A stretch of 64,000 nucleotides of DNA from Pseudomonas aeruginosa PAO1 (GTDB lineage Bacteria; Pseudomonadota; Gammaproteobacteria; Pseudomonadales; Pseudomonadaceae). The translations under genes were made by a program, and so were the position numbers. Where the stretch lies: assembly GCF_000006765.1 (NCBI RefSeq), contig NC_002516.2. One strand, written 5' to 3'. Shown here in pieces: positions 25,299 to 40,214 of this stretch (position 1 is the stretch's first letter; every line of letters begins with the position of its first letter). The notes under the pieces were generated by a model. That model saw only the letters and a program-made list of their open reading frames with translations. It was not told the DNA's origin and made no database searches.

Positions 25299-27464
25299 TC
25301 AGAACGGCAGCTCGGTCTGTTCACCCGGAGCATGCGGCGGCTGCTCTTCCCTTTCCGGCCGCAGATGCAGCATCAGCCCGCTGAGCCGGCGCACCTTGCG
25401 CCGCACTGCTTCCTCGAACACCCCGGGCAGGCTTTCCACCAGGCTGAACCAGTCGCGGGCGCGGGTGATACCGGTGTACACCAGCTCCTTGGTCAGCACC
25501 GGGTTCAGCGCGTCCGGCAGGACCAGCGCGGTATGGGCGAACTCCGAACCCTGCGACTTGTGCACGGTCATGGCGAACACGGTGTCCACCTCGACCAGGC
25601 GGCTCGGCAGGACGAAGCGCACGCCGCCGCTACCGTCGTTGCGCGGGAAGGCCACGCGCAGCGCGAAGCGCAGGCTGCCGTCGTCGTTGCGCTCGGGCAG
25701 GCGCAGGGCGATGCCGATATCGCCGTTCATCAGCCCCAGGCTGTAGTCGTTGCGCGTCACCAGTACCGGCCGCCCCTCGTACCAGCCGTGATCGGCCTCG
25801 ATCAGGCCAAGGCGCAGCAGTTCTGCCGCTACCCGCTGGTTCAGTCCTTCCACGCCCCATGGGCCGCGGCGCAGCGCGCAGAGCAGGCGGAAGGCGTCGA
25901 AAGCCGTCAGTACCGACTGCGCCCAGCGCTCCCAGGCGCCATCCTCCAGCGCCAGTCCGGCGGCCGGGCGGCCCTCGGCCAGGCGTTGCAGGTAGTGCCG
26001 GTAGCCGTACGGCGTGCCCGGCGCCTGCGGATGACCGTCGACGAACAGCCGGGCGAAGGCTGCATCGCGCTCCCCGCGCAGGCGCAGGTCGAAGAGGTCG
26101 GCGGGCGGACTGTCCAGCAGCGCGCGCGCGTCGCCGGCCTGTTGCCGGTTGACCAACCGCGCCAGGCGCCCGATCCCGCTGCTCGCGCCGAAGCGCCGGG
26201 AATGCCGCAGCATGACGGTCTGTTGCGCCAGCGGATGCGCCTGCGACGAACCTTCGCGCAAGCCCTGCCAGGTTTCGCCGCTGACCCGCTGCAACCAGGC
26301 GCGGGTCTCGGCGCTGTACCAGCCCTCCTCGGCATCCCGGCAGAGATCGCCGAGCACCGCGCCGGCCTCTACCGAGGCCAACTGGTCCTTGTCGCCGAGC
26401 AGGATCAGGCGCGCCTGCGGCGGTAGCGCATCGAGCAGGCTGGCCATCATTTCCAGGTCGATCATCGAGGCCTCGTCCACCACCAGCACGTCCAGCGCCA
26501 AAGGGTTGTCCCGGTGGTGGCGGAAGTGCCGGGTATCCGGACGGCTGCCAAGCAGACGGTGCAGGGTAGTGACCTCGGCGGGGATCGCCTGCAACACGTC
26601 TTCCGCCAGCGGCAGGGCCCGGACCTGCTGGCCGATGGATTCGGAGAGACGCGCCGCGGCCTTGCCGGTGGGCGCCGCGAGGCGGATGCGCAGCGGCTGG
26701 CCGGCGGCTACCGCCGGTGCCTGGAGCAGACCGAGCAGGCGCACCACGGTGGTGGTCTTGCCGGTACCGGGACCGCCGGTGATCAGGCTGAAATAGCCGC
26801 GGGCCGCCAGGGCGCAGGCCAGCTTCTGCCAGTCGGTGACGCGCTGGCCGTCTTCCGTAGGCGCCTGCGCGAACAGCGCGGCCAGGCGCGGCGCCAGGTC
26901 GGCGGCCAGGGGCGCCTGCCGACCCAGGCGCTCGCGCAGGGCCAGGGCGATCTCCAGTTCGTGCCGCCAATAACGACGCAGGTAGAGACGCTGGGCGCAA
27001 AGCACCAGCGGCGAGGTCGCCGTCTCGCTCGGCTCGGGATCGCCTGGGCGCTCGTCGACCACCTCCACCAGCGGTGACGCCGCCAGGGCCTCGCGCCAGG
27101 CGTCGAGGCGCACGCCGTGCAGCAGTTGCGACGGCAACAGCACATCGCGGCCTTCGTCGCCTTCCGGCGGCAGCGACAGTGCCGCGTCGGGCGCGCCGAC
27201 GGTCGCCTCCAGGTCCAGGCAGACGTGACCGTGGCCCAGTTGGTGGCTGGTCAGCGCCGCCGCCAGCAGCACCCGGGGATCGGCCTGCGGCTGCAACTCG
27301 ACGAGGAAGGCGACGAACGCCCGGTCCAGCGCCCGTAGCCAGCCGCGCGCCACCCACAGGTCGAGCTGGCGCAGCAGGTCGTGGCGTGCCGCCAGCGGTT
27401 GCGCTACCTGGTCGTCGCGGCCATCGCGGACTTCGCCGGCCAGTTGCTTGAGGGTCGGATTCAT
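25299..27464 (-). CDS. recD: RecBCD subunit RecD
   Basis: GGPGTGKTT, LVVDEASM, AMTVHKSQGSEF, YTGITRA. Confidence 0.97.
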   Translation of the reverse strand: MNPTLKQLAGEVRDGRDDQVAQPLAARHDLLRQLDLWVARGWLRALDRAFVAFLVELQPQADPRVLLAAALTSHQLGHGHVCLDLEATVGAPDAALSLPPEGDEGRDVLLPSQLLHGVRLDAWREALAASPLVEVVDERPGDPEPSETATSPLVLCAQRLYLRRYWRHELEIALALRERLGRQAPLAADLAPRLAALFAQAPTEDGQRVTDWQKLACALAARGYFSLITGGPGTGKTTTVVRLLGLLQAPAVAAGQPLRIRLAAPTGKAAARLSESIGQQVRALPLAEDVLQAIPAEVTTLHRLLGSRPDTRHFRHHRDNPLALDVLVVDEASMIDLEMMASLLDALPPQARLILLGDKDQLASVEAGAVLGDLCRDAEEGWYSAETRAWLQRVSGETWQGLREGSSQAHPLAQQTVMLRHSRRFGASSGIGRLARLVNRQQAGDARALLDSPPADLFDLRLRGERDAAFARLFVDGHPQAPGTPYGYRHYLQRLAEGRPAAGLALEDGAWERWAQSVLTAFDAFRLLCALRRGPWGVEGLNQRVAAELLRLGLIEADHGWYEGRPVLVTRNDYSLGLMNGDIGIALRLPERNDDGSLRFALRVAFPRNDGSGGVRFVLPSRLVEVDTVFAMTVHKSQGSEFAHTALVLPDALNPVLTKELVYTGITRARDWFSLVESLPGVFEEAVRRKVRRLSGLMLHLRPEREEQPPHAPGEQTELPF

Positions 27465-30400
27465 CGCTCGGCTCCCGGCTGGCCGCTGAACAGCGCGTCC
27501 AGGCGTTCGATCAGTTCCCGCGGCGGGCGCTCGAAGTGCAGGCCCTGGGTCGCCGCGCGGGTGCCGCGGAGGAACAGGTACACGGCGCCGCCCATGTGGC
27601 GGTCGTAGTCGTAGTCGGGCAGGCGCGCCTTCAACTGCCGGTGCAGGGCCAGCAGGTACAACACGTACTGCAGGTCATAACGGTTCTCCAGCACCGCGGC
27701 GGTCATCGCTTCCGGGCTGTAGGCGCCATCGTCGGCGCCCAGCCAGTTGGACTTGTAGTCGGCCACGTAGAAACGCCCCTGGTGCTCGAAGACCAGGTCG
27801 ACGAAGCCCTTGAACATGCCGTTCAGCAGGGTCGGCGCCAGCGCCGGACGCGCCGCGCCGCCGAGGGTATGGCGCCGGACCAGGGCGTCGATCGCCTCGG
27901 CCTGGACCTGGTGGGTGGCGAACCAGAACTCCATTTCCACCTGGTAGGCGACCAGCCCGGCCAGGCTGGTTTCGCCACCGGGCCAGCGCAGCGGTTCGGC
28001 GAGATACTGCTCCAGCCACAGGTCGAGCGGTTCGGCCCAGTCCTTCCAGCCACGCAGATCGCAGCGTCGCGCGACCAGTTCGCGGCGCCGCTGGGCATCG
28101 GCGCGCGCCACATCGAAGCCTTCGCGGCCGGCCCATTCGAGCAGCCCGTGGAGGAAGGTGCCGGGAGCCGGTCCGCGCGGGAAGCGATGCAGGTCGTCGC
28201 GCATCTCGCTGGCGTGCGCGACCGGCGGCTGTTCGGCGGAACGGCCTTCTTCGTGGAAGGTGGCTTCCTCGGCGCTGATCGGCTCCTGCGATTCGTCGCT
28301 CTCCAACACCTCGTCATCGTCCAGCCCGGCGGAGGCCTGCAATTGCAGGCCGGAATAGCTGGCGACCCACCACTTCTCGCGGCTGCTGCGGCGGGTTTCG
28401 CGGGCCTGCCCAAGGCCCTGGCCGCGCCCTGCGACATAGCGTTCGGCGTCCGCCTCGGGGGCCGGCTCGACGACGATCTCCCGGCACTCGCCGCGCAACG
28501 CGGCGAGGCATTGTCCGAGGCCATCGCTGCCGATGGTCGCGCCGCCGGCAAGCAGGTAGCCCAGGGCCCCCTTGTGCAACTCCGGCGACTTGCTGTTGCT
28601 CGCCACCAGCGGCGCGATGCCCAGCCACACCGAATGGCGGGCGCGGGTCAGGGCCACGTAGAGCAGGCGCATGTCTTCGCCGAGGCGCTCGTCGTTGGCC
28701 TGCTCGTAGGCCCGCGCAGCCTGCTCCTTGCGCCGCGCCAGCTCGATGACCCGCCCTGCAGCGCCATCCTCGTGGAAACTCGCCGGCGCGCCGCTGTTGC
28801 CGTCCAGCTCCCTCCAGCTGCAGATGAAGGGCAGCAGCACCAAGGGGTATTCCAGCCCCTTGGACTTGTGGATGGTCACCACCTTGATCAGGTCGGCGTC
28901 GCTTTCCAGGCGGAGGATCTCTTCGCTCCCCGGACTCTGCACCTGCTCGGCCAGATGGCGGATCAGCGCGTGCTCACCGTCCAGTTCCACCGCCGCGCGC
29001 TGCAGCCACTCGGCCAGGTGCAGCAGGTTGGTCAGGCTGCGCTCGCCATCGGCATGCCGCAGCAGGCGCGCCGGCAGTTCGAAGTCGGCGAGCAGGCGCC
29101 GCAGCATCGGCAATACGCCCTGGGCCTGCCAGGACCGGCGATAGTCGCGGAAGCGCAGGACCATCCGTTCCCAGAACAGTTCGTCCTGGTTCAATCGTTC
29201 CAGGGTCGCCCAGTCCAGGTGCAGGCTGCGGGTAGCCAGGGCGACCCGCAGCAGCGCATCGGCGCCGGGGTCGGCGCAGGCACGCAGCCAATGCAGCAGG
29301 TCGGCGGCTTCCTGGCTGTCGAACACCGAGTCGCGGTCGGACAGGTAGACGCTGGCCAGTCGTCGCGCCGCCAACGCGCTGCGGATCGCCTCGGCCTCGG
29401 CGCGACCGCGGACGAGGATGGCAATATCCGCCGGGCGCAACGCCCGCCAGCCGCCCTGCTCGTCGGCGAAGCCGGCGCGGCCCAGGTCGGCCAGGCTCAG
29501 CCAGCGGCGGATGGCGCTGGCGCTGCGCTCGGCCATTTCCTGGCGATACGCCGCGGAGCCGAGCACGCCGGCTTCGACATCAAGGTTCCAGAACGTCATC
29601 GCTGGCGCCTCGGCACCGTCGATCAACAAACGTTCGGCGCGCCCCTGAGCGTCCACCGCATGGAACGGCACCGGGTTTTCCAGCCCCTCGCGGGCGAAAC
29701 GGAAGGCGCCGCGCGGATGCTCTTCGGCGAAGGCGAAGCAGCGGTTGGCGGCCGCCACCATGGCGGCGGTCGAGCGGAAGTTCTTGCCAAGGGTGTAATG
29801 CCGCCCGCGAGTGGCCTCGCGGGCGCGCAGGTAGGTATGGATGTCGGCACCGCGGAAGGCGTAGATCGCCTGCTTGGGGTCGCCGATCATGAACAGGCCG
29901 GTTTCCCGCGCCTGGGGCTCGTCGGGATCGGCGGCGATCCGGTAGATGCGCTCGAAGATCCGGTACTGCACCGGGTCGGTATCCTGGAACTCGTCGATCA
30001 GCGCCACCGGGAACTGCTCGCGGATCAATTGCGCCAGGCGCTCGCCACCAGGCCCCTGCAAGGCGCGGTCGAGGCGGCTGAGCAGGTCGTCGAAGCCGAT
30101 CTCGGCACGCCGCTGCTTCTCGATCTCCAGTTCGTGCCCGACTTCGCCCAACGCGTGCAACAACAGGTGGGGAGCGAGATCGGGACGCTCTTCCTGATGC
30201 GCGGCCCAGGCGTCGATGGCCCTTAGCGCGGCATGCTCGGGCGCCACGCGCTTGGCGGTGAGCTTGATCCGGGTCTGGCCGAACTTGCCCAGGTTGGCCG
30301 GCTGCTCGCCGCCCTCGCTCCAGTCCGCCAACGCTTGCAGCCAGGCGTCGAAGGTCTCGTCGCTGTCCTTGCCGCGATAGCTGTTGCCGTTCAGGTAGGG

Positions 30401-31198
30401 ACGCAGGTCGCGCAGCAGCGCTTCCAGTTCGACGCGCGCTGCGCGCCAGGCGGCGCGGGCCTGCGCGTCCAGTTGGTCGAGCTGGCGATACCAGTCGCCG
30501 CCCTGCTCCAGCAAGGCTGCCAGTGACTCGGGCGCACTCAGCGCCTGGTCGGCGTAGCGGAAGTCGGCGTCCTGCCGCGCCAGCAGCGGCTGCAAGGCCT
30601 TGCCCAGCGCCTCCGGCCCACTGTAGCAACTGGCCACGGCTTGCGCCGCCGGAGCCGTCAGGCCGTAGAAGTTGCGCCGCCAGTAGTCCCGCACCACTTC
30701 GGCGAGCAATTCGCTCTGGTCGGTTTCCAGGTTCTGGGTGAACAGGCTGCCGCTGTCGAAGGCGTGCTCGCGCAGCATCCGGTAGCACCAACTGTGGATG
30801 GTCGATACCGCGGCCTCGTCCATCCACTCCGCGGCCAGGCGCAGCAGGCGCGCGCAGCCCGGCCAGCGCTCGGTGGGATACTGCTGGCGCAACGCGACCA
30901 GCAGGCCGTCGTGGCGCTCCTGCGGCTCGGCGAAACAACGCGCCGCTTCGCCCAGGCGGCTGCGGATACGCTCGCGGAGTTCCTGGGTCGCCGCATCGGT
31001 GAAGGTCACCACGAGGATTTCCGGCGGGCTCAGCGGCCGGCCGAAAGCGTTCTCGCCGCCATGGTCGAGGACCAGGCGTACGTATAGCAGGGCGATGGTG
31101 AACGTCTTGCCGGTACCGGCGCTGGCCTCGATCAGGCGGCTGCCGTGCAACGGGAAGTCCAGCGGATCGAGGGCCACGGGCATCTGCTGCTGGCTCAT
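27461..31198 (-). CDS. recB: RecBCD subunit RecB
   Basis: ASAGTGKT, IDEFQDTD, VTIHKSKGLEY, nuclease motif GFVDLVF...ADYKSN. Confidence 0.98.
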   Translation of the reverse strand: MSQQQMPVALDPLDFPLHGSRLIEASAGTGKTFTIALLYVRLVLDHGGENAFGRPLSPPEILVVTFTDAATQELRERIRSRLGEAARCFAEPQERHDGLLVALRQQYPTERWPGCARLLRLAAEWMDEAAVSTIHSWCYRMLREHAFDSGSLFTQNLETDQSELLAEVVRDYWRRNFYGLTAPAAQAVASCYSGPEALGKALQPLLARQDADFRYADQALSAPESLAALLEQGGDWYRQLDQLDAQARAAWRAARVELEALLRDLRPYLNGNSYRGKDSDETFDAWLQALADWSEGGEQPANLGKFGQTRIKLTAKRVAPEHAALRAIDAWAAHQEERPDLAPHLLLHALGEVGHELEIEKQRRAEIGFDDLLSRLDRALQGPGGERLAQLIREQFPVALIDEFQDTDPVQYRIFERIYRIAADPDEPQARETGLFMIGDPKQAIYAFRGADIHTYLRAREATRGRHYTLGKNFRSTAAMVAAANRCFAFAEEHPRGAFRFAREGLENPVPFHAVDAQGRAERLLIDGAEAPAMTFWNLDVEAGVLGSAAYRQEMAERSASAIRRWLSLADLGRAGFADEQGGWRALRPADIAILVRGRAEAEAIRSALAARRLASVYLSDRDSVFDSQEAADLLHWLRACADPGADALLRVALATRSLHLDWATLERLNQDELFWERMVLRFRDYRRSWQAQGVLPMLRRLLADFELPARLLRHADGERSLTNLLHLAEWLQRAAVELDGEHALIRHLAEQVQSPGSEEILRLESDADLIKVVTIHKSKGLEYPLVLLPFICSWRELDGNSGAPASFHEDGAAGRVIELARRKEQAARAYEQANDERLGEDMRLLYVALTRARHSVWLGIAPLVASNSKSPELHKGALGYLLAGGATIGSDGLGQCLAALRGECREIVVEPAPEADAERYVAGRGQGLGQARETRRSSREKWWVASYSGLQLQASAGLDDDEVLESDESQEPISAEEATFHEEGRSAEQPPVAHASEMRDDLHRFPRGPAPGTFLHGLLEWAGREGFDVARADAQRRRELVARRCDLRGWKDWAEPLDLWLEQYLAEPLRWPGGETSLAGLVAYQVEMEFWFATHQVQAEAIDALVRRHTLGGAARPALAPTLLNGMFKGFVDLVFEHQGRFYVADYKSNWLGADDGAYSPEAMTAAVLENRYDLQYVLYLLALHRQLKARLPDYDYDRHMGGAVYLFLRGTRAATQGLHFERPPRELIERLDALFSGQPGAER

Positions 31199-34100
31199 GC
31201 CTGCTCCTCCGCGCCACGTCCCAGGGCAGCCAGCAGCGGCGCGTAGAGCTGCTCGGCCCAGTGCGCGAACTCACCGCTGGCGAGCAGCCGGTCGAAGTCC
31301 GGATAGACCCGAGCCAGCGCCGGCGAGGCGTCCACCTCGCCCCCCATGCCGAACCCTCCCTCGTAGCGCTTGCGCGCCTCGCGCATGGCTTTCTCGGGCT
31401 CTGCGGCGCCACCACTGGCGAGCCAGGCGAAAGCGGTCCGGCAGGCCAGCGGCAACGGCTGGCGCATGCCCTGGCGCCAGGCGTCGATCAACTGGTCGAG
31501 GTACTCGCTGGCACGCTCGCTCGGCAACGGCGGAATCTCCAGGGTGCCGGTCTGGCTCACCAGCACGCTGCTCACCGGCTGGCCTAGACGTTGCAGGGCG
31601 AGGTGCTGCAACCAGTGGCGTACCAGGCTGTGCCACTTGAAGCTGCGCCCCTCATGGAGCTTGCCGCTGAGCAATTGCAGGCGCGCCAGGCGCCCGGAAG
31701 CGTCGCGACGCAAGCCGCCGAGCCAGTCCTCCAGCTCCAGCCCGGACGGATGGCGATGGCGCAACTCCTGCTGCTGCTCGACCGCCTCCGGCCAGCGCTC
31801 GATTTCCTGGCGGTAGCGCCAGAGCAGGTCGGGCAGCGGTTGCAGCAAATGGCGCGCGGAGAACTCGCCGAACGCCGCCAGCGGCAGGCGACCCTGTCGC
31901 CGCAGTCGCTCGACCTGGGCCTGCAACTGCACCGGCAGGCCCTCGGCATCCCAGTCCCGCTCGACCCAGCGCTTCATGCGTTCGGTCAGCTCGAATTGCA
32001 GCTTCCAGTTGTCCAGCGCGTCCAGTTCGAAAGGCTCTTCGTCGTTGCCGGTCAATTGCTCGTCGTCGAAACGCACCTTGAGCCGCTGCTGGAAGAACGC
32101 ATTCACCGGGTTGGCGAGGAACTCCGCCAGCGCTCGCAGCCCCAGCGCGCCCTCCAGCTCCAGCGGCGGCAGGGGCGCTTCGGCGTCGGGAACGCCGATC
32201 TCGTCCTCGCGATGGACCTCGCGCCACTCGCGGGCGTAGGTGAACAGGCCATCGACGCCCTGCTCCGGCGCATCGTGAAAATACCGGCGGCTGAACGGCT
32301 GCAGCGGATGCTCCTGGGTCAGGGCACGCAGCAGCGCCTCGCCGTCGCCGTCCGGATCCAGGCGCCAGCCGGCCGCCAGGTGATCGCGCAACTGGCCGAT
32401 CAGCACCGAGGGCGGCCGCTCGCCATTGTCGCGGATACTCCGCCCCACCCAGCTCACGTAGAGTTGCTCGCGCGCCGAGAGCAGCGCCTCGAGCAGCAGG
32501 TAGCGGTCGTCCTCGCGCCGCGAGCGGTCGCCGGGGCGGTAGTCGTTGCGCATCAGGTCGAAATCCAGCGGCGACTGCTGGCGGGGGTAGTCGCCATCGT
32601 TCATGCCAAGCAGGCAGACCAGCCGGAACGGGATCGCGCGCATCGGCATCAACGTGCAGAAACTCACCGCGCCAGCCAGGAAGCGCTGGTTCAGGCCGCC
32701 CTGGTCCAGGCCGCCGAGCCAGGCCTCGCGTATCACGCTGATCGGTAGCGGCTCGGCGAAGGCCGCACAAGCGCAGTGTTCCTGCCAGCGCTCGAGCAAT
32801 TGCAGGAGCTGGGTGAGAAGCAGTTCGTCGCGCTCGTCGTGGGCCTCGAAGAACACCGTGAGCAGGGCTTGCAGGCGCTCGCCCCACTGCGCCGGGGTGG
32901 CCGGTTCGGCCAGCTCGGCGTAGGCCACCTCGAGGCGCTCCAGCAGCACAGCCAGCGGGCCTGCCAGGGCGGCGTCCAGACCACCGACCTCATCGTAGGG
33001 CTGGATGCCTTGCAGGGCCGCGCCTTCGCCGACCGCGTAGCCGAGCAGCATGCGCCGCAGACCGAAGCGCCAACTGTTGCCCTCCAGTCCCGCTGGCAGG
33101 CCGAGACGCTCGCGCTGCGCGGCATCCAGCCCCCAGCGCACGCCGGCGCCTTCGATCCAGCGGTGCAGGGTCGCCAGGTCGGCCTCGTCGACGCCGAAAC
33201 GCCGGCGCAATGCCGGGACGTCCAGCAGGTCGAGGATCTCGCTCACGGCGAAACGGCTGTCGGGCAGTTTCAGCAGATGCTCCAGGGCGATCAGCAGCGG
33301 CTCGCGACCGCGCTGTCCCTGGTCGGCCAGGGTATAGGGAATGAAGCGCTGGTCGTCGCGCGGCACCTGGCCGAACACCGCCTCGATGTGCGGCGCGTAG
33401 GCGTTGATGTCGGGGACCATGACGATCACGTCGCGCGGCTTCAGGCTCGGATCGGCGTTGAAGCGGGCGAGCAACTGGTCGTGGAGGATCTCCACTTCGC
33501 GCTGCGCGCTGTGGGCCACATGGAAGCGGATCGAGGCGTCGCTCCGCGGCGCCACCGGCGGCCAGTGCTCGCGGGTTTCCGCCAACGGGCGCAGTTCGAG
33601 GATATCGTCCTGCAACTGGCCGAGCAGCCCGTGCGGGGTCTCCTCGCTGAACAGGTCGATGCGCCCGCCGTTGACCTCGCCGAACAGGTTCCGATAGCTG
33701 TCCGGGTCGTCGTAGCTGTCGAGCAGGTTGATGTAGTCGCGGCCCTGCTTGCCCCAGGCCGCCAGCAACGGCTGGGCATGCTGGTGCTGGCGGTCCTCGT
33801 CGAGGTCGGCGGGGACGCCGGCGCGGCGCTGCTGGCGGCGGTACTCGTGGCGCAACAGGTCCTTGTCGGCGACGATGTCGGCCCAGTGGTGGCGACAGGG
33901 GTTGTGCACGCAGAGCAGCACCTGGCTGAACCTGGCCAGGGCGGCCAGCGCCTCGAGGGTCTGCGCCGGCATCGAGGAAATCCCGAACACCACCACTCGT
34001 CGCGGCAACGCGCGCGGCGCCGCGCTGGCGGAGCGCAGCGCCTCGATGAAGCGCCGGTGCACGCCGGAGCGGCTGCGGGCCAGGCTATCGGCACCGACGT

Positions 34101-34710
34101 CGGCGAGCAGCGCGCGCCACAATTCGGCCTGCCAGCGCTCGTCGGCACCGAGCGGGCGCGCCTGCCCGTTCGCCGTGCGCAACTGGTCGCGGCCCTGGCT
34201 CCAGTCGTCGAGCCAGTCGCCGCGATAGACCTGGTACTGGTCGAACAGGTCGGCCAGGCGCTCGGCCAGTTGATGACGCTTGCGCAGGTCGGCATCGTCG
34301 GCGAGGAAACGTTGCAGGGTGCGGAACTCGGGACGCTCCAGCAATCCGGGAAGCAGACGCATCAGGCGCCAGGTCAGCGGCGCCTTGTCCAGTTCGGAAA
34401 CCTCGGGAATGCTTTCGCGGCCCAGCACCGCGCGATAGGCCTGCCAGAGGAACTGCGCCGGCAACTGCACCTCCAGCGCCGCGGCGATGCCGCCACCGCC
34501 GCCGCCGTCCTCGCGGGGATCTTCGGCCAATGCCAGCTTCAACCATTGGGCGATGCCGTTGCTGTGCACCAGGACCCGCTCGCTTTCCAGCGGCGCCAGC
34601 GGATAGCGGCGCATCCAGGAAACGGCGAGGTCGCGCAGGTCGTCCAGGCGATTGCCGTGGACGATCATGAATCCGGGCGTGAGAGCGGTGGTTCCCAAGG
34701 GTTCTGGCAT
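31195..34710 (-). CDS. recC: RecBCD subunit RecC
   Basis: HGNRLDDL, FDQYQVYR, FCTLMPMRAIPF; ATGA overlap with recB. Confidence 0.97.
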   Translation of the reverse strand: MPEPLGTTALTPGFMIVHGNRLDDLRDLAVSWMRRYPLAPLESERVLVHSNGIAQWLKLALAEDPREDGGGGGGIAAALEVQLPAQFLWQAYRAVLGRESIPEVSELDKAPLTWRLMRLLPGLLERPEFRTLQRFLADDADLRKRHQLAERLADLFDQYQVYRGDWLDDWSQGRDQLRTANGQARPLGADERWQAELWRALLADVGADSLARSRSGVHRRFIEALRSASAAPRALPRRVVVFGISSMPAQTLEALAALARFSQVLLCVHNPCRHHWADIVADKDLLRHEYRRQQRRAGVPADLDEDRQHQHAQPLLAAWGKQGRDYINLLDSYDDPDSYRNLFGEVNGGRIDLFSEETPHGLLGQLQDDILELRPLAETREHWPPVAPRSDASIRFHVAHSAQREVEILHDQLLARFNADPSLKPRDVIVMVPDINAYAPHIEAVFGQVPRDDQRFIPYTLADQGQRGREPLLIALEHLLKLPDSRFAVSEILDLLDVPALRRRFGVDEADLATLHRWIEGAGVRWGLDAAQRERLGLPAGLEGNSWRFGLRRMLLGYAVGEGAALQGIQPYDEVGGLDAALAGPLAVLLERLEVAYAELAEPATPAQWGERLQALLTVFFEAHDERDELLLTQLLQLLERWQEHCACAAFAEPLPISVIREAWLGGLDQGGLNQRFLAGAVSFCTLMPMRAIPFRLVCLLGMNDGDYPRQQSPLDFDLMRNDYRPGDRSRREDDRYLLLEALLSAREQLYVSWVGRSIRDNGERPPSVLIGQLRDHLAAGWRLDPDGDGEALLRALTQEHPLQPFSRRYFHDAPEQGVDGLFTYAREWREVHREDEIGVPDAEAPLPPLELEGALGLRALAEFLANPVNAFFQQRLKVRFDDEQLTGNDEEPFELDALDNWKLQFELTERMKRWVERDWDAEGLPVQLQAQVERLRRQGRLPLAAFGEFSARHLLQPLPDLLWRYRQEIERWPEAVEQQQELRHRHPSGLELEDWLGGLRRDASGRLARLQLLSGKLHEGRSFKWHSLVRHWLQHLALQRLGQPVSSVLVSQTGTLEIPPLPSERASEYLDQLIDAWRQGMRQPLPLACRTAFAWLASGGAAEPEKAMREARKRYEGGFGMGGEVDASPALARVYPDFDRLLASGEFAHWAEQLYAPLLAALGRGAEEQA

Positions 34711-34750
34711 CGGTACGGCTATTCCTGGCGCAAGGCTCTGGCGAAAGAGG

Positions 34751-35434
34751 TCAGGATCGGGCGGCGACGAAGCGTCGTTCCAGTTCGAGGCTGTCGGCCA
34801 TGCGGAAATCGCTCCAGCGCTCGCTCAGGCCGAGATGGCTGTCCGCCTGGCAATCCGGGGCACTGGCGCAACGGCGGGTGAAGGTGTTGACCACCTCGAC
34901 CATCTCCTCGCGCTCGGCGCCGACCAGCAGCGCCGCGTGCGCCAGCACCACCGGCCGGCCGGCGCCGTTGCGCCGCCAGCGTTGCGCGGTCCCGGCGAGC
35001 TTGCGCCCATCCAGGGTGACATTGTAGCGGCCGTCGCAGAAGGAACCGGCCACGGCGCCCACGCCGGCGTCCAGGCCGCGCTCGCGGAGCCAGTCGCAGA
35101 TCGGCTGGCACAGCCGCAGGTAGGCGGTTTCGATACGGGTCTGCTCGTTGTCGCCGGGCCCCAGCGCATAGGACAGGGCGATGTTCAGCACGCCCGGCGA
35201 TTGCGGCACCGGCTCGCCGCCGGTATCGCGCAGCAGCACCGGCCAGCCGCGTTCGGCGACCGCTGCGCTGGCCGGCGCGAATCCTTCCAGGCGCTCCATC
35301 CGGCGCGGCATGACCAGCGCCCGATCGCAGGGCTGCCAGAGCAACAGGCCATGCTCGCGGGCACCGCCACACACCTCGTCGAGCAGGGCGCGCTCGGCGT
35401 CCAGCCCATCCTGCACGGAAAACACTTCGACCAC
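34751..35434 (-). CDS. LplA/LipL-family protein (PA4286)
   Basis: Probable GTG start at 35434 after GAGGA; RDTGGEPV...GVLNIAL and GSFCDGRYN...GRKLAGTAQR. Confidence 0.8.
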   Translation of the reverse strand: MVEVFSVQDGLDAERALLDEVCGGAREHGLLLWQPCDRALVMPRRMERLEGFAPASAAVAERGWPVLLRDTGGEPVPQSPGVLNIALSYALGPGDNEQTRIETAYLRLCQPICDWLRERGLDAGVGAVAGSFCDGRYNVTLDGRKLAGTAQRWRRNGAGRPVVLAHAALLVGAEREEMVEVVNTFTRRCASAPDCQADSHLGLSERWSDFRMADSLELERRFVAARS

Positions 35435-35546
35435 GATTCTTCCTCTTCCAGGCTGGCACGGCTCGGCTCCCACGCGGGGAGCGCTGCCTATGATAGCCAG
35501 TGGCGGCGCCTCCGTGCGCCGTAATCGCGAGGAAGTTGCCGGGAAA

Positions 35547-36437
35547 TCAGCAGGTTGCCGAACGCAGACGGGCCGGGCGGCGCTGCCAGAACTCGGCCAG
35601 CAGGACCCCGGCCAGGGTCAGCGCGCCGCCGACCAGGTGATGGACGGTCAGGCGCTCGCCGAGCACCAGGGTGGCGATGCAGGCGGTGATGATCGGCAGC
35701 AGGTTGAAGAACAGGGCCATCCGGCTCGGCCCGAGACGGGCGACACCGTGCATCCAGGCCAGCGCGGCGACGATCGAGGCGAACAGCGCGGCGTACAGCA
35801 CCAGCGGCAGGTTGGCGGCGTTCAGGCCGGTGCGCGGCGACAGCAGGTACAGCGGCAGCAGGGCGAGGATCGCCACCAGCACCTGCAGGTAGAGCAGTTG
35901 CATGGCCGGCAGCTTCAGGCTCCATTTCTTCAGCAGCACGCTGTACACCGCATAGGCCAGGGTGGCGACGATCATCATCGCGTCGCCGAGATTCACTCCA
36001 TGCTCCAGCAAAGCGCCGAGATGGCCCTGGGAGATCACCAGCACCACGCCGGCCAGCGACACCAGCGCGCCGAGCAGCGCCCCGGCGTTCAGCCGGTGGG
36101 CCAGGATGCTGCTGGCCAGGCCCAGCGACATCAGGGGCATCAGCGACAGGATGATGCCCATGTTGGTGGCGCTGGTCAGCGCTGCCGCGTAGTAGGCCAG
36201 GCTCTGGTAGACGGCCATGCCGAGCAGGCCGAGGACCACGAACTTGCCGAGGTTGGCGAGGATGTAGCGGCGGTTGCGCAGCACCGGGCCGAGCATGAAG
36301 GGCGTCAGCGCCAGGCCGACCAGCAGCCAGCGGAAGAAACCGATCTCGGCGGGCTGGATGATCCCCACGGCGAGCTTGTTGACGACGGTGTTGCCGGCCC
36401 AGATGAACACGGCCAGCAGGGGAAACAGGTATTGCAT
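35547..36437 (-). CDS. EamA/DMT-family exporter (PA4287)
   Basis: 296 aa from MQYLFPLLAVFIWAGN; about 10 hydrophobic segments in two repeats. Confidence 0.88.
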   Translation of the reverse strand: MQYLFPLLAVFIWAGNTVVNKLAVGIIQPAEIGFFRWLLVGLALTPFMLGPVLRNRRYILANLGKFVVLGLLGMAVYQSLAYYAAALTSATNMGIILSLMPLMSLGLASSILAHRLNAGALLGALVSLAGVVLVISQGHLGALLEHGVNLGDAMMIVATLAYAVYSVLLKKWSLKLPAMQLLYLQVLVAILALLPLYLLSPRTGLNAANLPLVLYAALFASIVAALAWMHGVARLGPSRMALFFNLLPIITACIATLVLGERLTVHHLVGGALTLAGVLLAEFWQRRPARLRSATC

Positions 36438-36537
36438 GGGAGGTTCCGCACTATGAAAAAGGAATACGCGGCCATTCTGAGCCAGTCCGAATACAGACGT
36501 ATAATGAATTCCAGACAAACCACCCGTAGGTTCGGAC

Positions 36538-37341
36538 ATGTCGACCACCACCTTGCTGCGCCTTCCCGATCTCCAGGGGCAGTCTTTCGACGTCTATTTC
36601 CGCTATGACGAGTTCGGCGCCGACACCCATTCGCCGCCGCACACCCACGCCTGGGGCCAGCTCAACTATGCAGCCCATGGCGTGATGCAGCTGGAGATCG
36701 ACGGCCAGCGCTTCCTCTCGCCTCCGCAATACGCGGTATGGATACCACCGGAGCGGGTGCACAGCTGCTACAACAGCCAGGCCATCGTCTACCGCTCGCT
36801 GTACCTCTCCGCCGAACTGTCACGACGCCTGCCGGCGACACCTTGCACCCTGGCGATCAGCGCGATCCTCAAGGCGATCCTCTCGGACTTCGCCGAGCGC
36901 GGGGTCAACCTGCCGACCTCGGCGCAGGACCTGCGCCTGGCCCGGGTCGTCATGGACCAGCTGGAATGCGCCCAGCCCCACGACGACTACCTGCCCTACG
37001 GCCGTACCCCGGCGCTGCGCGAGGTGCTCGACGCACTGCAGGCCGAGCCGGGCGACAACCGCTCGCTGGCGCAATGGGCGCAGCAGGTGCACAGCACCGA
37101 GCGAACCCTGGCCCGGCACTGCCAGCGCGAACTGGGCATGACCTTCGGCGAATGGCGCCAACGCCTGCGCTTCCTCGCGGCCATCGAGGCGCTGGAAGCC
37201 GGCAGGGGGATCCAGCAGATCGCCTTCGACCTCGGCTACAGCAGCCCCTCGGCGTTCATCTCGATGTTCCGCCGGCTGGCCGGCACCACACCGGAACAAT
37301 ACCGCCTGGCCAGCCGCGCCCAGGACATGCCGATGCTGTAA
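36538..37341 (+). CDS. AraC-family regulator, cupin + HTH, NimR/YeaM-like (PA4288)
   Basis: HTHAWGQL, PPQYAVWIP, C-terminal IAFDLGYSSPSAFISMFRR. Confidence 0.9.
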   Translation: MSTTTLLRLPDLQGQSFDVYFRYDEFGADTHSPPHTHAWGQLNYAAHGVMQLEIDGQRFLSPPQYAVWIPPERVHSCYNSQAIVYRSLYLSAELSRRLPATPCTLAISAILKAILSDFAERGVNLPTSAQDLRLARVVMDQLECAQPHDDYLPYGRTPALREVLDALQAEPGDNRSLAQWAQQVHSTERTLARHCQRELGMTFGEWRQRLRFLAAIEALEAGRGIQQIAFDLGYSSPSAFISMFRRLAGTTPEQYRLASRAQDMPML

Positions 37342-37395
37342 CCCGCCGTGCATGCGTTGCGGCTATGCTCGCAGCAGCCACCATCCGGAGTTCGC

Positions 37396-38601
37396 ATGCC
37401 AACCGCCAGCCGCCATCCCGACACCGCCCTCGCGGTGTTCCTCGCCTTCCTCAAGCTGGGCTGCAGCGCCTTCGGCGGGCCCATCGCCCACCTCGGCTAT
37501 TTCCGCGACGAGTTCGTCCGCCGCCGCGGCTGGCTGAGCGAAAGCAGCTACGCCGACCTGGTCGCCCTCTGCCAGTTCCTTCCCGGCCCCGCCAGCAGCC
37601 AGGTCGGCATGGCCCTCGGCCTGGCCCGCGCCGGCTATCCCGGCGCCCTCGCCGCCTGGCTCGGTTTCACCCTGCCCTCGGCGTTGCTACTGGTGCTCTT
37701 CGCTCTCGGCCTGGGACGCTGGGGCGCGCTGTTGCCCGAGGGCGTGCTGCATGGCCTGAAGATCGCCGCGGTGGCGGTGGTGGCCCAGGCGGTCTGGGGC
37801 ATGGGACGCAGCCTGTGCCCGGATCGCCCGCGCCTGACGCTGATGGCGCTGTCCTGCGCGAGCGTGCTGGCCTGGCCCACTGCCTGGACCCAAGTCGCGG
37901 TGATCGCCGGTGCCGGCCTGGCCGGCCTCGCCCTGTTGAAAACGGAAGCAGTGGAAGGCCACGAGCGGCTGCCGATCGACATTGGCTACCGCGGCGCGCT
38001 GCTGTTCCTCACCCTGTTCGCCGTGCTGCTGGTCTGCCTGCCGCTAGCCGCGCGCCTCTGGCCGGAACACTGGCTGCGCCTGCTCGATGCGTTCTACCGG
38101 GCTGGCTCGCTGGTATTCGGCGGTGGCCATGTGGTGCTGCCGCTGCTGCAGGCGGAAGTGGTACCCAAGGGCTGGGTCGACGGCGATACCTTCCTCGCCG
38201 GCTACGCGGCCGCCCAGGCGGTACCGGGCCCGCTCTTCACCTTCGCCGCGTTCCTCGGCGCAGCCTCGGGCCCGGCGCCGAACGGCTGGAGCGGCGCGCT
38301 GCTGTGCCTGCTGGCGATCTTCCTGCCGTCGTTCCTGCTGGTCGCCGGTGCCTTGCCATTCTGGGAACGCCTGCGCCACGAACGCCGGGTACGGGCAACG
38401 CTGGCCGGGGTCAACGCGGCGGTGGTCGGCCTGCTGCTGGCGGCGCTGTACCAGCCGCTCTGGACCGAAGGCATCCTGCGCCCGGCCGACTTCGCCCTGC
38501 TGCTCTTCGCCCTGCTGGCCCTGCTCGCCTGGAAGACGCCGCCCTGGCAAGTGGTGCTCGCCTGCGCCGTGGCCGGCGGCCTGATCGCCACAGCCGGCTA
38601 G
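37396..38601 (+). CDS. chrA: Long-chain chromate ion transporter (ChrA family, PA4289)
   Basis: ATG after GGAG; [30 protein letters not shown] in two repeats. Confidence 0.88.
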
Positions 38602-40214
38602 CCGTTCAAGGCCAGGCTCAGCCCCTGCGCCGTCGGCGCGGCCGCCTTGCCCGGCTCCGCGCCCTCCGGCCGGTAGCCGAGGCGCAGGCCGCCCCAGTGC
38701 TTGCCGTGGACGAAGATCGGCACCGAAAGATCGTGCATCAGCTCGCCGGTGTCACGGGTGTAGGTCTGTAGCAACAGCGGCTGCTGGTGGCTGCCGCAGC
38801 GAATCCCGGTGCGGTCGTTGAACAGGCGCTTGCTGCGGCTGCGCAACGCGTCCGTCTGCGGGTCGCCGCTGGGCGGATGGGCGAAGGCGCGATTGTGGGT
38901 GGGCACGTAGCCTTCGGGGGTACAGGCGATGGCGAATACCAGGTTGCGGTTGCGCTCCAGCAACTGCTCCTGGATGCCCGGCAGGACCTGGTCGGTGTAG
39001 CTGTCGAAGCGGGTCCGGTACTTGGTCGGCTGGGTATTGGGCAACGGCTGGTAGCTGCGGTCGAACAGGTCGTCGAGGTCGATGCGCCCGCTGCGCACGT
39101 CCTCCTCGAAGCGAGCGGCGATAGCCGCCGCGCCCTCCCGGGCGAGGTCGTAGACCGACTGGTGGTAGGCGTCCAGGCTGACCTCGGCGAGGCGCTCGCT
39201 GATCACCTCGGCCTGGTTCTCCAACTGGCTGGCAGCTTCGCCGAGGCGCAGGGTCTGTTCCTCGCTGGCGCTGAGGTCGCCGCGCACCTGCTCGACCGCG
39301 GCGAACAGGCTGGCGAGTTGGCTGCGGTTGATCTCGGCGCCCTGGGCGATCTCGGTAATCTGGCTTTCCACCCCGGCCGCCAGTTCGGCAATGCCTTCCA
39401 GTTGCCGACCGGTCAGCTCGACCTGGCCGACCCCTTCCCCCAACTCTTCGGAAAGCTGGCGGATCTGCTCGACCACCTCGCTGGTCTGGCGCTGGATCTC
39501 GGCGACCATCTGGCCGACTTCCTCGGTGGCCTCGGCGGTACGTCCGGCCAGGCCGCGCACCTCTTCGGCAACCACCGCGAAGCCGCGCCCATGCTCGCCG
39601 GCGCGGGCCGCCTCGATGGCCGCGTTGAGGGCCAGCAGGTTGGTCTGGCTGGCGATGCCCTGGATCACCAGGGTGACCCGCTGGATGTCCTCGCTGCGCT
39701 GGTTCAGCGCCTCGATCGCCTCGCGGCTGGCGCCCATCCGCTCGCTGAGCCGATGCATGCGCTCGATGGTCGAGGCCAGCAGCACCTGGCCTTCGTCGCT
39801 GCCGGCGCGCGCCCGGGTGGCGGCGTCCATGGCCTGGCGCGCCAGATTGGAGGTGGCGCGCTCGGTGTGGATCATCACTTCGGCGCTGCCGACGATCTGT
39901 TCGGCGGCGTCGAGCTGGGATTGCAGCTTCTCCGCCAGGCGCTTCACCGAGAACGCCACGCCGGCGGCCGACAAGGCGTTCTGGCTGGTGTTATGGGACA
40001 GGTCGCGAGCCAGCCGGGCGATGTCGGGCTCGCCGACGGTCGCCACCGCCGTGCGGTTGCCGGGAAGCAGCCAGGGCAACCAGAGCAGCGCCACGCCGAG
40101 CGGCAGGGCCAGGTACAGCGGCAGCCAGCCATGCCGGGCGCCGACCAGCAGGAGAACCAGGGCCAGGCTCTGCAACAGGCAGACGAAGAGGATGCGGGAA
40201 CGAGCGGGCTGCAT
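38598..40214 (-). CDS. Methyl-accepting chemotaxis protein with C-terminal extra domain (PA4290)
   Basis: N-terminal hydrophobic hairpin; [27 protein letters not shown]; ~170-aa tail after the signalling domain. Confidence 0.9.

Follow-up and report, generated by a model that had tools for sequence, protein, structure and literature searches.

Lipoate assembly in Proteobacteria is usually described as the work of LipB and LipA, sometimes together with LplA. LipM, an octanoyl-acyl carrier protein (ACP):GcvH octanoyltransferase, is a single-domain relative of LplA that has a catalytic Cys and no requirement for ATP. In the LipL of Bacillus subtilis, C150 is reported to be essential both for catalysis and for the acyl-enzyme intermediate (bioRxiv 10.1101/419234). 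According to a 2023 survey of this pathway, LipB is present in Proteobacteria but LipM never is, and LipL belongs to Firmicutes and Tenericutes; the survey also considers that unknown amidotransferases may exist (PMC10332631). We analyzed a 64,000-nucleotide stretch of the Pseudomonas aeruginosa PAO1 genome (contig NC_002516.2; the whole stretch is hereafter the window) and, within it, a gene immediately upstream of recCBD whose product resembles LipL. Judged on sequence, fold, and gene context, this gene, which we take to be the PAO1 locus PA4286, probably encodes a functional Cys-dependent octanoyl/lipoyl transferase of the LplA/LipB superfamily, in a proteobacterial subfamily nearest to the LipL-type enzymes, and the P. 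aeruginosa copy has probably been orphaned from a dehydrogenase gene cluster. The gene and its two predicted catalytic residues lie in the window as follows:

34751 to 35434, minus strand: coding sequence of the LipL-like gene, 227 amino acids, with the stop codon at 34751 to 34753 and a GTG start at 35432 to 35434
35036 to 35038, minus strand: codon of Cys133, the predicted acyl-thioester nucleophile, from its alignment with Cys150 of 2p5i
35000 to 35002, minus strand: codon of Lys145, the lysine of the G-R-K-x-A-G-T-A-Q-R motif, invariant in both family alignments

Pfam matched the protein to a single domain, PF21948 (LplA-B_cat), at 70 bits (cut-off 27) over residues 10 to 199, and found no second domain in the 227 residues. 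An AlphaFold model built from an alignment of 84 relatives had a predicted local distance difference test score (pLDDT) of 96.3 along the whole chain and a predicted template modeling score (pTM) of 0.92; because the model is this confident from end to end, there is no room for the C-terminal domain of LplA, as a first-pass annotation of this DNA had remarked. Both LipL-like motifs quoted in that annotation are present, and Cys133 is at the codon it had singled out.

Among the NCBIfam models, the two that scored best on the protein describe GcvH-dependent transferases, namely NF053589 (48.4 bits) and NF047857 (LipL, 31.6 bits), and the LplA models gave 17 to 18 bits (TIGR00545, 17.3 bits against a cut-off of 280). 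A phmmer search of solved-structure sequences returned 2p5i (BH3822, E value 5.6e-10) and 2p0l (E value 3.5e-6), and a profile of the 84 family members scored these two chains at 102.7 and 80.4 bits, with LplA-type ligases at 20 to 49 bits and no match to LipB chains at an E value of 0.01 or better. Foldseek likewise ranked 2p5i and 2p0l first for the AlphaFold model (E values of about 1e-15, the best being 9e-16, and TM scores of 0.74 to 0.78), with archaeal LplA, LipB, and bacterial LplA below them; the LplA targets were aligned over their N-terminal domain alone. By family model and by solved structure, then, the closest matches are LipL-type. Cys133 is aligned with Cys150 of BH3822/2p5i in both the pairwise and the profile alignment, and Lys145 with the second of the two lysines in the K-K-F-A-G motif of that chain. 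In the Cys133 column, the LplA-type chains show a gap or a residue other than Cys, and their conserved lysine is also matched by Lys145. The proposal that the Cys occupies the position of the LipL catalytic Cys is borne out by these alignments.

On this evidence the resemblance to LipL, the catalytic Cys/Lys pair included, is real and far beyond chance. The LipL equivalog cut-offs were nonetheless missed (48.4 against 400 bits for NF053589 and 31.6 against 450 bits for NF047857), and because of these scores the protein is, by curated thresholds, no LipL orthologue. The earlier suggestion of a Firmicute-like LipL is thus supported in part, by the fold, the architecture, and the Cys/Lys pair, but not as regards membership of LipL itself.

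With LipL of B. subtilis and other Firmicutes (structures 2p5i and 2p0l) the protein shares a single LplA/LipB catalytic domain without an accessory domain, a Cys at the C150 position, and a lysine 12 residues later. It differs in length (227 to 260 residues compared with about 280 in LipL), in motifs of the family's own (P-Q-x-P-G after T-G-G, and G-T-A-Q-R-W-R), in occurring in Proteobacteria whose genomes have LipB instead of LipM or LplJ, and in gene context, since the family genes are linked to acetoin-type clusters for E1, a lipoyl carrier, and E2, whereas the LipL gene stands alone. LipB (octanoyl-ACP:protein octanoyltransferase) has in common with it the superfamily PF21948, the Cys/Lys chemistry, and a similar size, but the nearest genome in our sample, which shares 91% of its words with the window and encodes a LipL-like protein 100% identical to that of the window, has a separate true LipB, and the LipL-like protein is below the reporting level of TIGR00214. 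The LplA and LplJ ligases share the fold of the catalytic domain and the conserved lysine, whereas the family lacks an accessory domain, has an altered adenylate loop (G-G-G-A-V-Y-H-D in LplA, T-G-G-E-P-V-P-Q-S-P-G in the LipL-like protein), and carries a Cys that the ligases do not have.

The LipB loop reads H-G-P-G-Q, and the family's P-Q-x-P-G after T-G-G resembles it more than it does the LipL loop. This, together with a fold and a Cys/Lys chemistry common to LipM and LipB and the good Foldseek matches to the LipB structures 1w66 and 2qhs (E values of about 1e-10), would suit an octanoyl-ACP:protein octanoyltransferase of the LipM or LipB kind, which would place octanoate from ACP directly onto particular lipoyl domains in parallel to LipB; a dedicated enzyme encoded beside an E2 gene also needs no GcvH relay. 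We regard this alternative as unlikely. The best sequence, profile, and NCBIfam matches are all to GcvH-dependent transferases, the family profile matched no LipB chain at an E value of 0.01 or better, and TIGR00214, at an E value of 1e-5 or better, found the true LipB locus alone in the nearest genome; Proteobacteria are, moreover, reported never to carry LipM (PMC10332631).

In the 84 aligned members, W33, R69, G72, G135, K145, G148, and A150 are invariant, and C133, D134, N138, T149, Q151, R152, and H166 are at least 90% conserved. An exhaustive search of 1.84 billion representatives recovered 934 clusters (defined at 50% identity) with E values up to 0.001, of which 509 reached 1e-10; members are 215 to 290 residues long. 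Named members come from Pseudomonas, Roseobacter, Mesorhizobium, and Aquamicrobium, and copies on plasmids or chromids from Salinivibrio, Vibrio, Cupriavidus, Caballeronia, Burkholderia, Phaeobacter, Paracoccus, and others; databases call them 'lipoate--protein ligase family protein', 'lipoyl protein ligase domain-containing protein', or 'hypothetical protein', and occasionally use the name of the LipL enzyme. The distribution of the gene is patchy. Of 151 Pseudomonadaceae genomes sampled, 44 have it, as do all 14 from the genus to which the window belongs; across the class, it turned up in 2 of 301 evenly drawn genomes (absence, here and below, means not found in the genomes searched). Literature searches on LipL in Pseudomonas or Proteobacteria, on BH3822, and on PA4286, which left most subscription journals outside their reach, found no study of the family. 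We rate the family as a distinct, uncharacterised subfamily of Cys-dependent lipoyl/octanoyl transferases for which LipL is the closest known enzyme.

Gene context suggests what the family acts on. We examined 80 Pseudomonadaceae loci, each with 6 kb of flanking DNA to either side, for RecC, EamA, and further neighbors. At 19 of these, in Stutzerimonas and others, the gene directly follows those for E1 beta, an 81-residue stand-alone lipoyl-domain protein, and an E2 catalytic core, with a 4-nucleotide overlap. The gene also comes after E1 beta and a lipoyl carrier of 79 to 109 residues in four of nine distant proteobacterial genomes, most of the four having E1 alpha upstream and the E2 core in between. 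Among plasmid contexts with RefSeq annotation, six of seven have the gene after an acetoin-type dehydrogenase layout: on the Phaeobacter, Roseibium, Paracoccus, and Gemmobacter plasmids the order is E1 alpha, E1 beta, lipoyl domain-containing protein, 2-oxo acid dehydrogenase subunit E2, and then the LipL-like gene; the Aminobacter plasmid has the same E1 beta, lipoyl protein, and E2 layout with no annotated E1 alpha; and in Paraburkholderia a classical acoX-acoA-acoB-acoC operon comes first. The Salinivibrio copy is the sole orphan of the seven, and the Cupriavidus metallidurans CH34 megaplasmid, whose record has no feature annotation, was left out of the count. A GMC oxidoreductase or sigma-54 regulator gene is often found near the plasmid clusters. 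This recurrent placement after acetoin-type dehydrogenase genes points to a role in the modification of lipoyl domains.

Elsewhere in the Pseudomonadaceae, the gene lies between trpGDC and crp/vfr at 46 of the 80 loci (fluorescens, putida, and syringae groups) and is flanked by GGDEF and Na/H exchanger genes at 10 (nitroreducens and citronellolis group), and recC is downstream at one, that of P. paraeruginosa, the window itself being the second case. In a maximum likelihood tree, E2-linked copies are dispersed over either side of the midpoint root, with six changes of state, and the trpC-crp, GGDEF, and recC contexts each form one clade; the tree came from a quick, short search with some long branches, Shimodaira-Hasegawa-like approximate likelihood ratio test (SH-aLRT) support only, and a midpoint root without outgroup. 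Most simply, linkage to an acetoin-type dehydrogenase would have come first, and the orphan copies, that of P. aeruginosa included, would have arisen by relocation.

Two records in the sample carry Pseudomonas-type copies under other names and are probably mislabelled or contaminated: L120, labelled Pantoea sp. Cy-639, and L062, a metagenome-assembled genome labelled Lysobacter sp. The former has the full trpD-trpC-gene-crp order, with 91 to 93% protein identity to the Pseudomonas reference used, and falls within a Pseudomonas clade of the tree.

The dehydrogenase cluster with a split E2 recurs in Alpha-, Beta-, and Gammaproteobacteria, both on plasmids and in chromosomes: genes for E1 alpha, E1 beta, a free lipoyl-domain protein of 77 to 109 residues, and an E2 core without lipoyl domain are followed by the LipL-like gene, often with genes for a GMC oxidoreductase, a gluconate-2-dehydrogenase subunit-3-like protein, and a sigma-54 regulator. 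Split-E2 clusters were located at the following positions of the extracted loci:

L156, 2962 to 8897
L158, 1426 to 5142
L160, 1516 to 5193
L161, 1389 to 7363
L145, 7993 to 11616
L139, 4897 to 10930

The cluster of Stutzerimonas stutzeri (L056, 2919 to 6750) has a zinc alcohol dehydrogenase gene before E1 beta in place of E1 alpha, with no E1 alpha within 6 kb, and is followed by genes for a pyrroloquinoline quinone (PQQ)/cytochrome c alcohol dehydrogenase and an OprB porin.

In the mechanism that we propose for the transferase, Cys133 would attack an octanoyl or lipoyl donor to form an acyl-thioester enzyme, from which, with the assistance of Lys145, the acyl group would be handed on, without the use of ATP, to the lysine that is modified in an apo lipoyl domain. 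As donor, a lipoyl protein that already carries the group (GcvH or another lipoyl domain, as with LipL) is more probable than octanoyl-ACP, although an enzyme dedicated to a neighboring E2 might take octanoate from ACP just as well, in the manner of LipM and LipB. The enzyme would be a dedicated modifier of lipoyl domains that the general LipB may serve poorly, with its gene placed, in most of the family, directly after E1 alpha, E1 beta, and then either a stand-alone lipoyl carrier of about 80 residues and an E2 core, or AcoC. The P. aeruginosa copy would have lost its dehydrogenase linkage, come to lie between an EamA gene and recC, and its product probably modifies in trans one or more lipoyl proteins of the cell itself (AcoC, other E2 proteins, or GcvH); AcoC may be the likeliest target, because the family associates with aco clusters. 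A complex prediction with GcvH gave an interaction prediction score from aligned errors (ipSAE) of 0.52, compared with 0.00 for the best of three controls, although a pass of 0.60 or less is wrong more often than it is right; in the calibration, 51 of 78 solved complexes attained this score, as did 2 of 108 mismatched pairs. The runs agreed in at least 98% of contacts, with a partner pLDDT of 91, and since a solved complex of LplA with H-protein exists, the model may have reproduced it; we do not count the prediction as evidence on the donor.

Several points weigh against assigning the gene to a transferase of this kind. Identity to the LipL-type structures is about 18% in the Foldseek alignments and the model scores are about one-tenth of their cut-offs; substrate and donor are therefore not transferable by homology, and from the sequence data a LipL-like donor cannot be told apart from a LipM-like one. 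The GcvH complex prediction is weak, and a similar score would probably be obtained with any lipoyl domain. LipB is regarded as an all-purpose transferase in Proteobacteria (PMC10332631), and its presence in the organism leaves the need for a second enzyme unexplained. The nearest genome has four full-length E2 proteins, no catalytic-core-only E2, and no split-E2 cluster. Finally, the searched literature contains no activity measurement for any family member.

The nearest genome has LipB and LipA, on which the first-pass annotation had supposed the organism to rely: a true LipB (209 bits) is directly followed by LipA (424 bits), and a profile search found neither LplA nor any further PF21948 protein beyond LipB and the LipL-like protein. 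With this complement, a GcvH-specific LipM or LplJ route that could partner a LipL-type step was not found there. LplA was likewise found in none of the 14 genomes of the window's genus, which, with the database name 'lipoate--protein ligase family protein', might suggest an ATP-dependent lipoate or octanoate salvage ligase without accessory domain that fills in for the missing LplA. We consider such a ligase very improbable: there is no C-terminal domain and no LplB-like gene adjoining the LipL-like gene in the window neighborhood, TIGR00545 reaches only 17 of the 280 bits of its cut-off, the LplA loop is replaced, and the family Cys is one that ligases lack. Nor are the two genes complementary in Pseudomonadaceae; LplA was found in only one of the genera sampled (7 of 151 genomes), irrespective of the LipL-like gene, and most Pseudomonadaceae do without LplA whether or not they have the gene (44 of 151), so a role as LplA replacement was rejected.

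The nearest genome encodes two ordinary GcvH proteins and a third, GcvH-like protein of 155 residues (PF01597, 85 bits) that keeps the lipoyl-lysine motif and whose gene comes right after a DsrE-like gene (L005, 1082 to 1920, at about 5.42 Mb). The pair is reminiscent of the lipoate-binding proteins of sulfur oxidisers, and the GcvH-like protein occurs in 37 of 151 Pseudomonadaceae genomes. It was rejected as a partner of the LipL-like protein, since in one genus all six genomes have it and the LipL-like gene was found in none, and in another all 13 genomes have the LipL-like gene but just one has the GcvH-like protein. An 82-residue carrier of the nearest genome was also considered as a split-E2 lipoyl carrier and rejected, having a biotinyl-type E-V-M-K-Q motif and a biotin carboxylase gene beside it. 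Its gene (L147, 3421 to 5891, at about 0.54 Mb) lies between LamB/YcsF-like and biotin carboxylase genes in an ordinary-looking arrangement.

A more far-reaching proposal, which we hold only tentatively and think rather doubtful, is that the family is an undescribed proteobacterial lipoyl/octanoyl relay, the 'unknown amidotransferase' called for by surveys, which would originally have served to load the free-standing carrier of split-E2, acetoin-type dehydrogenases, the orphan providing LplA-independent movement of lipoyl groups between proteins. If so, a second, substrate-dedicated branch would be added to proteobacterial lipoate assembly, it would be explained how the unusual free-standing lipoyl carriers obtain their cofactor, and the P. 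aeruginosa orphan might also capture lipoyl groups from lipoylated peptides.

In the window, the LipL-like gene is flanked by the following features:

34711 to 34750, minus strand: spacer of 40 nucleotides between the LipL-like gene and recC, without terminator, nearly identical in P. paraeruginosa
31195 to 34710, minus strand: recC, the first gene of recCBD (Exonuc_V_gamma 348 bits, RecC_C 172 bits)
27461 to 31198, minus strand: recB, overlapping the end of recC by 4 nucleotides (UvrD-helicase, UvrD_C, PDDEXK_1)
25299 to 27464, minus strand: recD, overlapping the end of recB by 4 nucleotides (RecD_N, AAA_19, AAA_30)
35435 to 35546, minus strand: spacer of 112 nucleotides 5' of the LipL-like gene, with a ribosome-binding site at 35439 to 35449 and a block at 35485 to 35502 that is conserved with P. 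paraeruginosa and contains TATCAT, a candidate promoter
35547 to 36551, minus strand: EamA-family transporter gene (EamA 135 bits), the upstream neighbor, outside the system

The spacing of 40 nucleotides on the same strand noted in the first-pass annotation is exact, recC starting 40 nucleotides after the stop codon of the LipL-like gene; a functional meaning of this position is not supported by comparison. Adjacency to recC is limited to P. aeruginosa and its sister species P. paraeruginosa, and in five further species of the genus the 1.5 kb preceding recC contains neither the LipL-like nor the EamA gene. Because recC is a neighbor in these two species only, a role in cofactor attachment is favored over that of a DNA-repair partner, and the adjacency is probably a lineage-specific juxtaposition, functionally unconnected with DNA repair. 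A role linked to RecBCD, or the placing of an acyl group on a target other than a lipoyl domain, would draw on the shared strand, the 40-nucleotide gap without terminator, an RNA contig that spans the junction, and the retention of the arrangement in P. paraeruginosa, but with recC adjacent at 1 of the 80 Pseudomonadaceae loci, a lipoyl carrier and E2 as the recurrent informative context, and nothing in the protein to suggest DNA or nuclease binding, we give it a very slight chance. For P. aeruginosa, a conserved 'hypothetical' gene beside recC would instead gain a testable biochemical role as a lipoyl/octanoyl transferase, and a cofactor enzyme at the head of a DNA-repair operon would be explained as a recent accident of gene order.

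The GTG start at 35432 to 35434 has the ribosome-binding site GGAAGAGGAAG (35439 to 35449) 5' of it. Another GTG, at 35473, would give a longer frame. In the DNA alignment of P. aeruginosa with P. paraeruginosa, conservation is strong from the ribosome-binding site into the gene, and the stretch immediately 5' of that site has diverged and contains an indel; because conservation begins at the ribosome-binding site, the start at 35434 is favored, and homologues too start within a few residues of it.

No terminator-like site or hairpin was found in 34711 to 34750, and RNA of the junction between the LipL-like gene and recC folds worse than shuffled sequence (z score +1.92). In the 112-nucleotide upstream spacer no consensus sigma-70 promoter was found; an 18-nucleotide block (35485 to 35502) containing TATCAT is conserved with P. 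paraeruginosa. RNA-library contigs cover the LipL-like gene. In the low-depth library X23, one contig runs from inside recC across the 40-nucleotide spacer to 35267 and a second reaches 35436, 2 nucleotides upstream of the GTG start, where coverage ends; recC and the LipL-like gene are covered, and no contig lies on 35437 to 36628, the region of the EamA gene. The deep libraries X1, X8, and X13 gave 19-kb contigs that are uninformative on transcripts, and RNA contigs cannot prove one transcript. Given the lack of a terminator, the conserved block, and the pattern of X23 contigs, which fit it, the LipL-like gene is probably read from a promoter of its own in the 112-nucleotide spacer with read-through into recCBD, and co-transcription with recCBD is plausible.

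The ratio of nonsynonymous to synonymous substitution rates (dN/dS) between P. aeruginosa and P. paraeruginosa is 0.13 for the LipL-like gene (dS 0.28) and 0.11 for recC; the gene is under purifying selection. The EamA gene was left out of this comparison, its value being unreliable because the two N-termini had been read in different frames. That it is a decaying remnant of a lost acetoin-type cluster, with no present function, might be suspected from its separation from any E2 cluster in the nearest genome and from the long branch of its own that it occupies in the tree (stem 0.52), but the intact frame with all invariant residues, a dN/dS about that of recC, complete identity in the nearest genome, and coverage by RNA-library contigs make this scarcely credible.

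Beyond the EamA gene, the region from 36538 to 40214 begins with an AraC-family regulator gene, identified by Pfam, that diverges from it. Nothing unusual was seen in this region. From reading the translations only, an open reading frame at 37348 to 38601, after the AraC-type gene, encodes a chromate-transporter-like protein, and one at 38598 to 40214 on the minus strand encodes a methyl-accepting chemotaxis protein.

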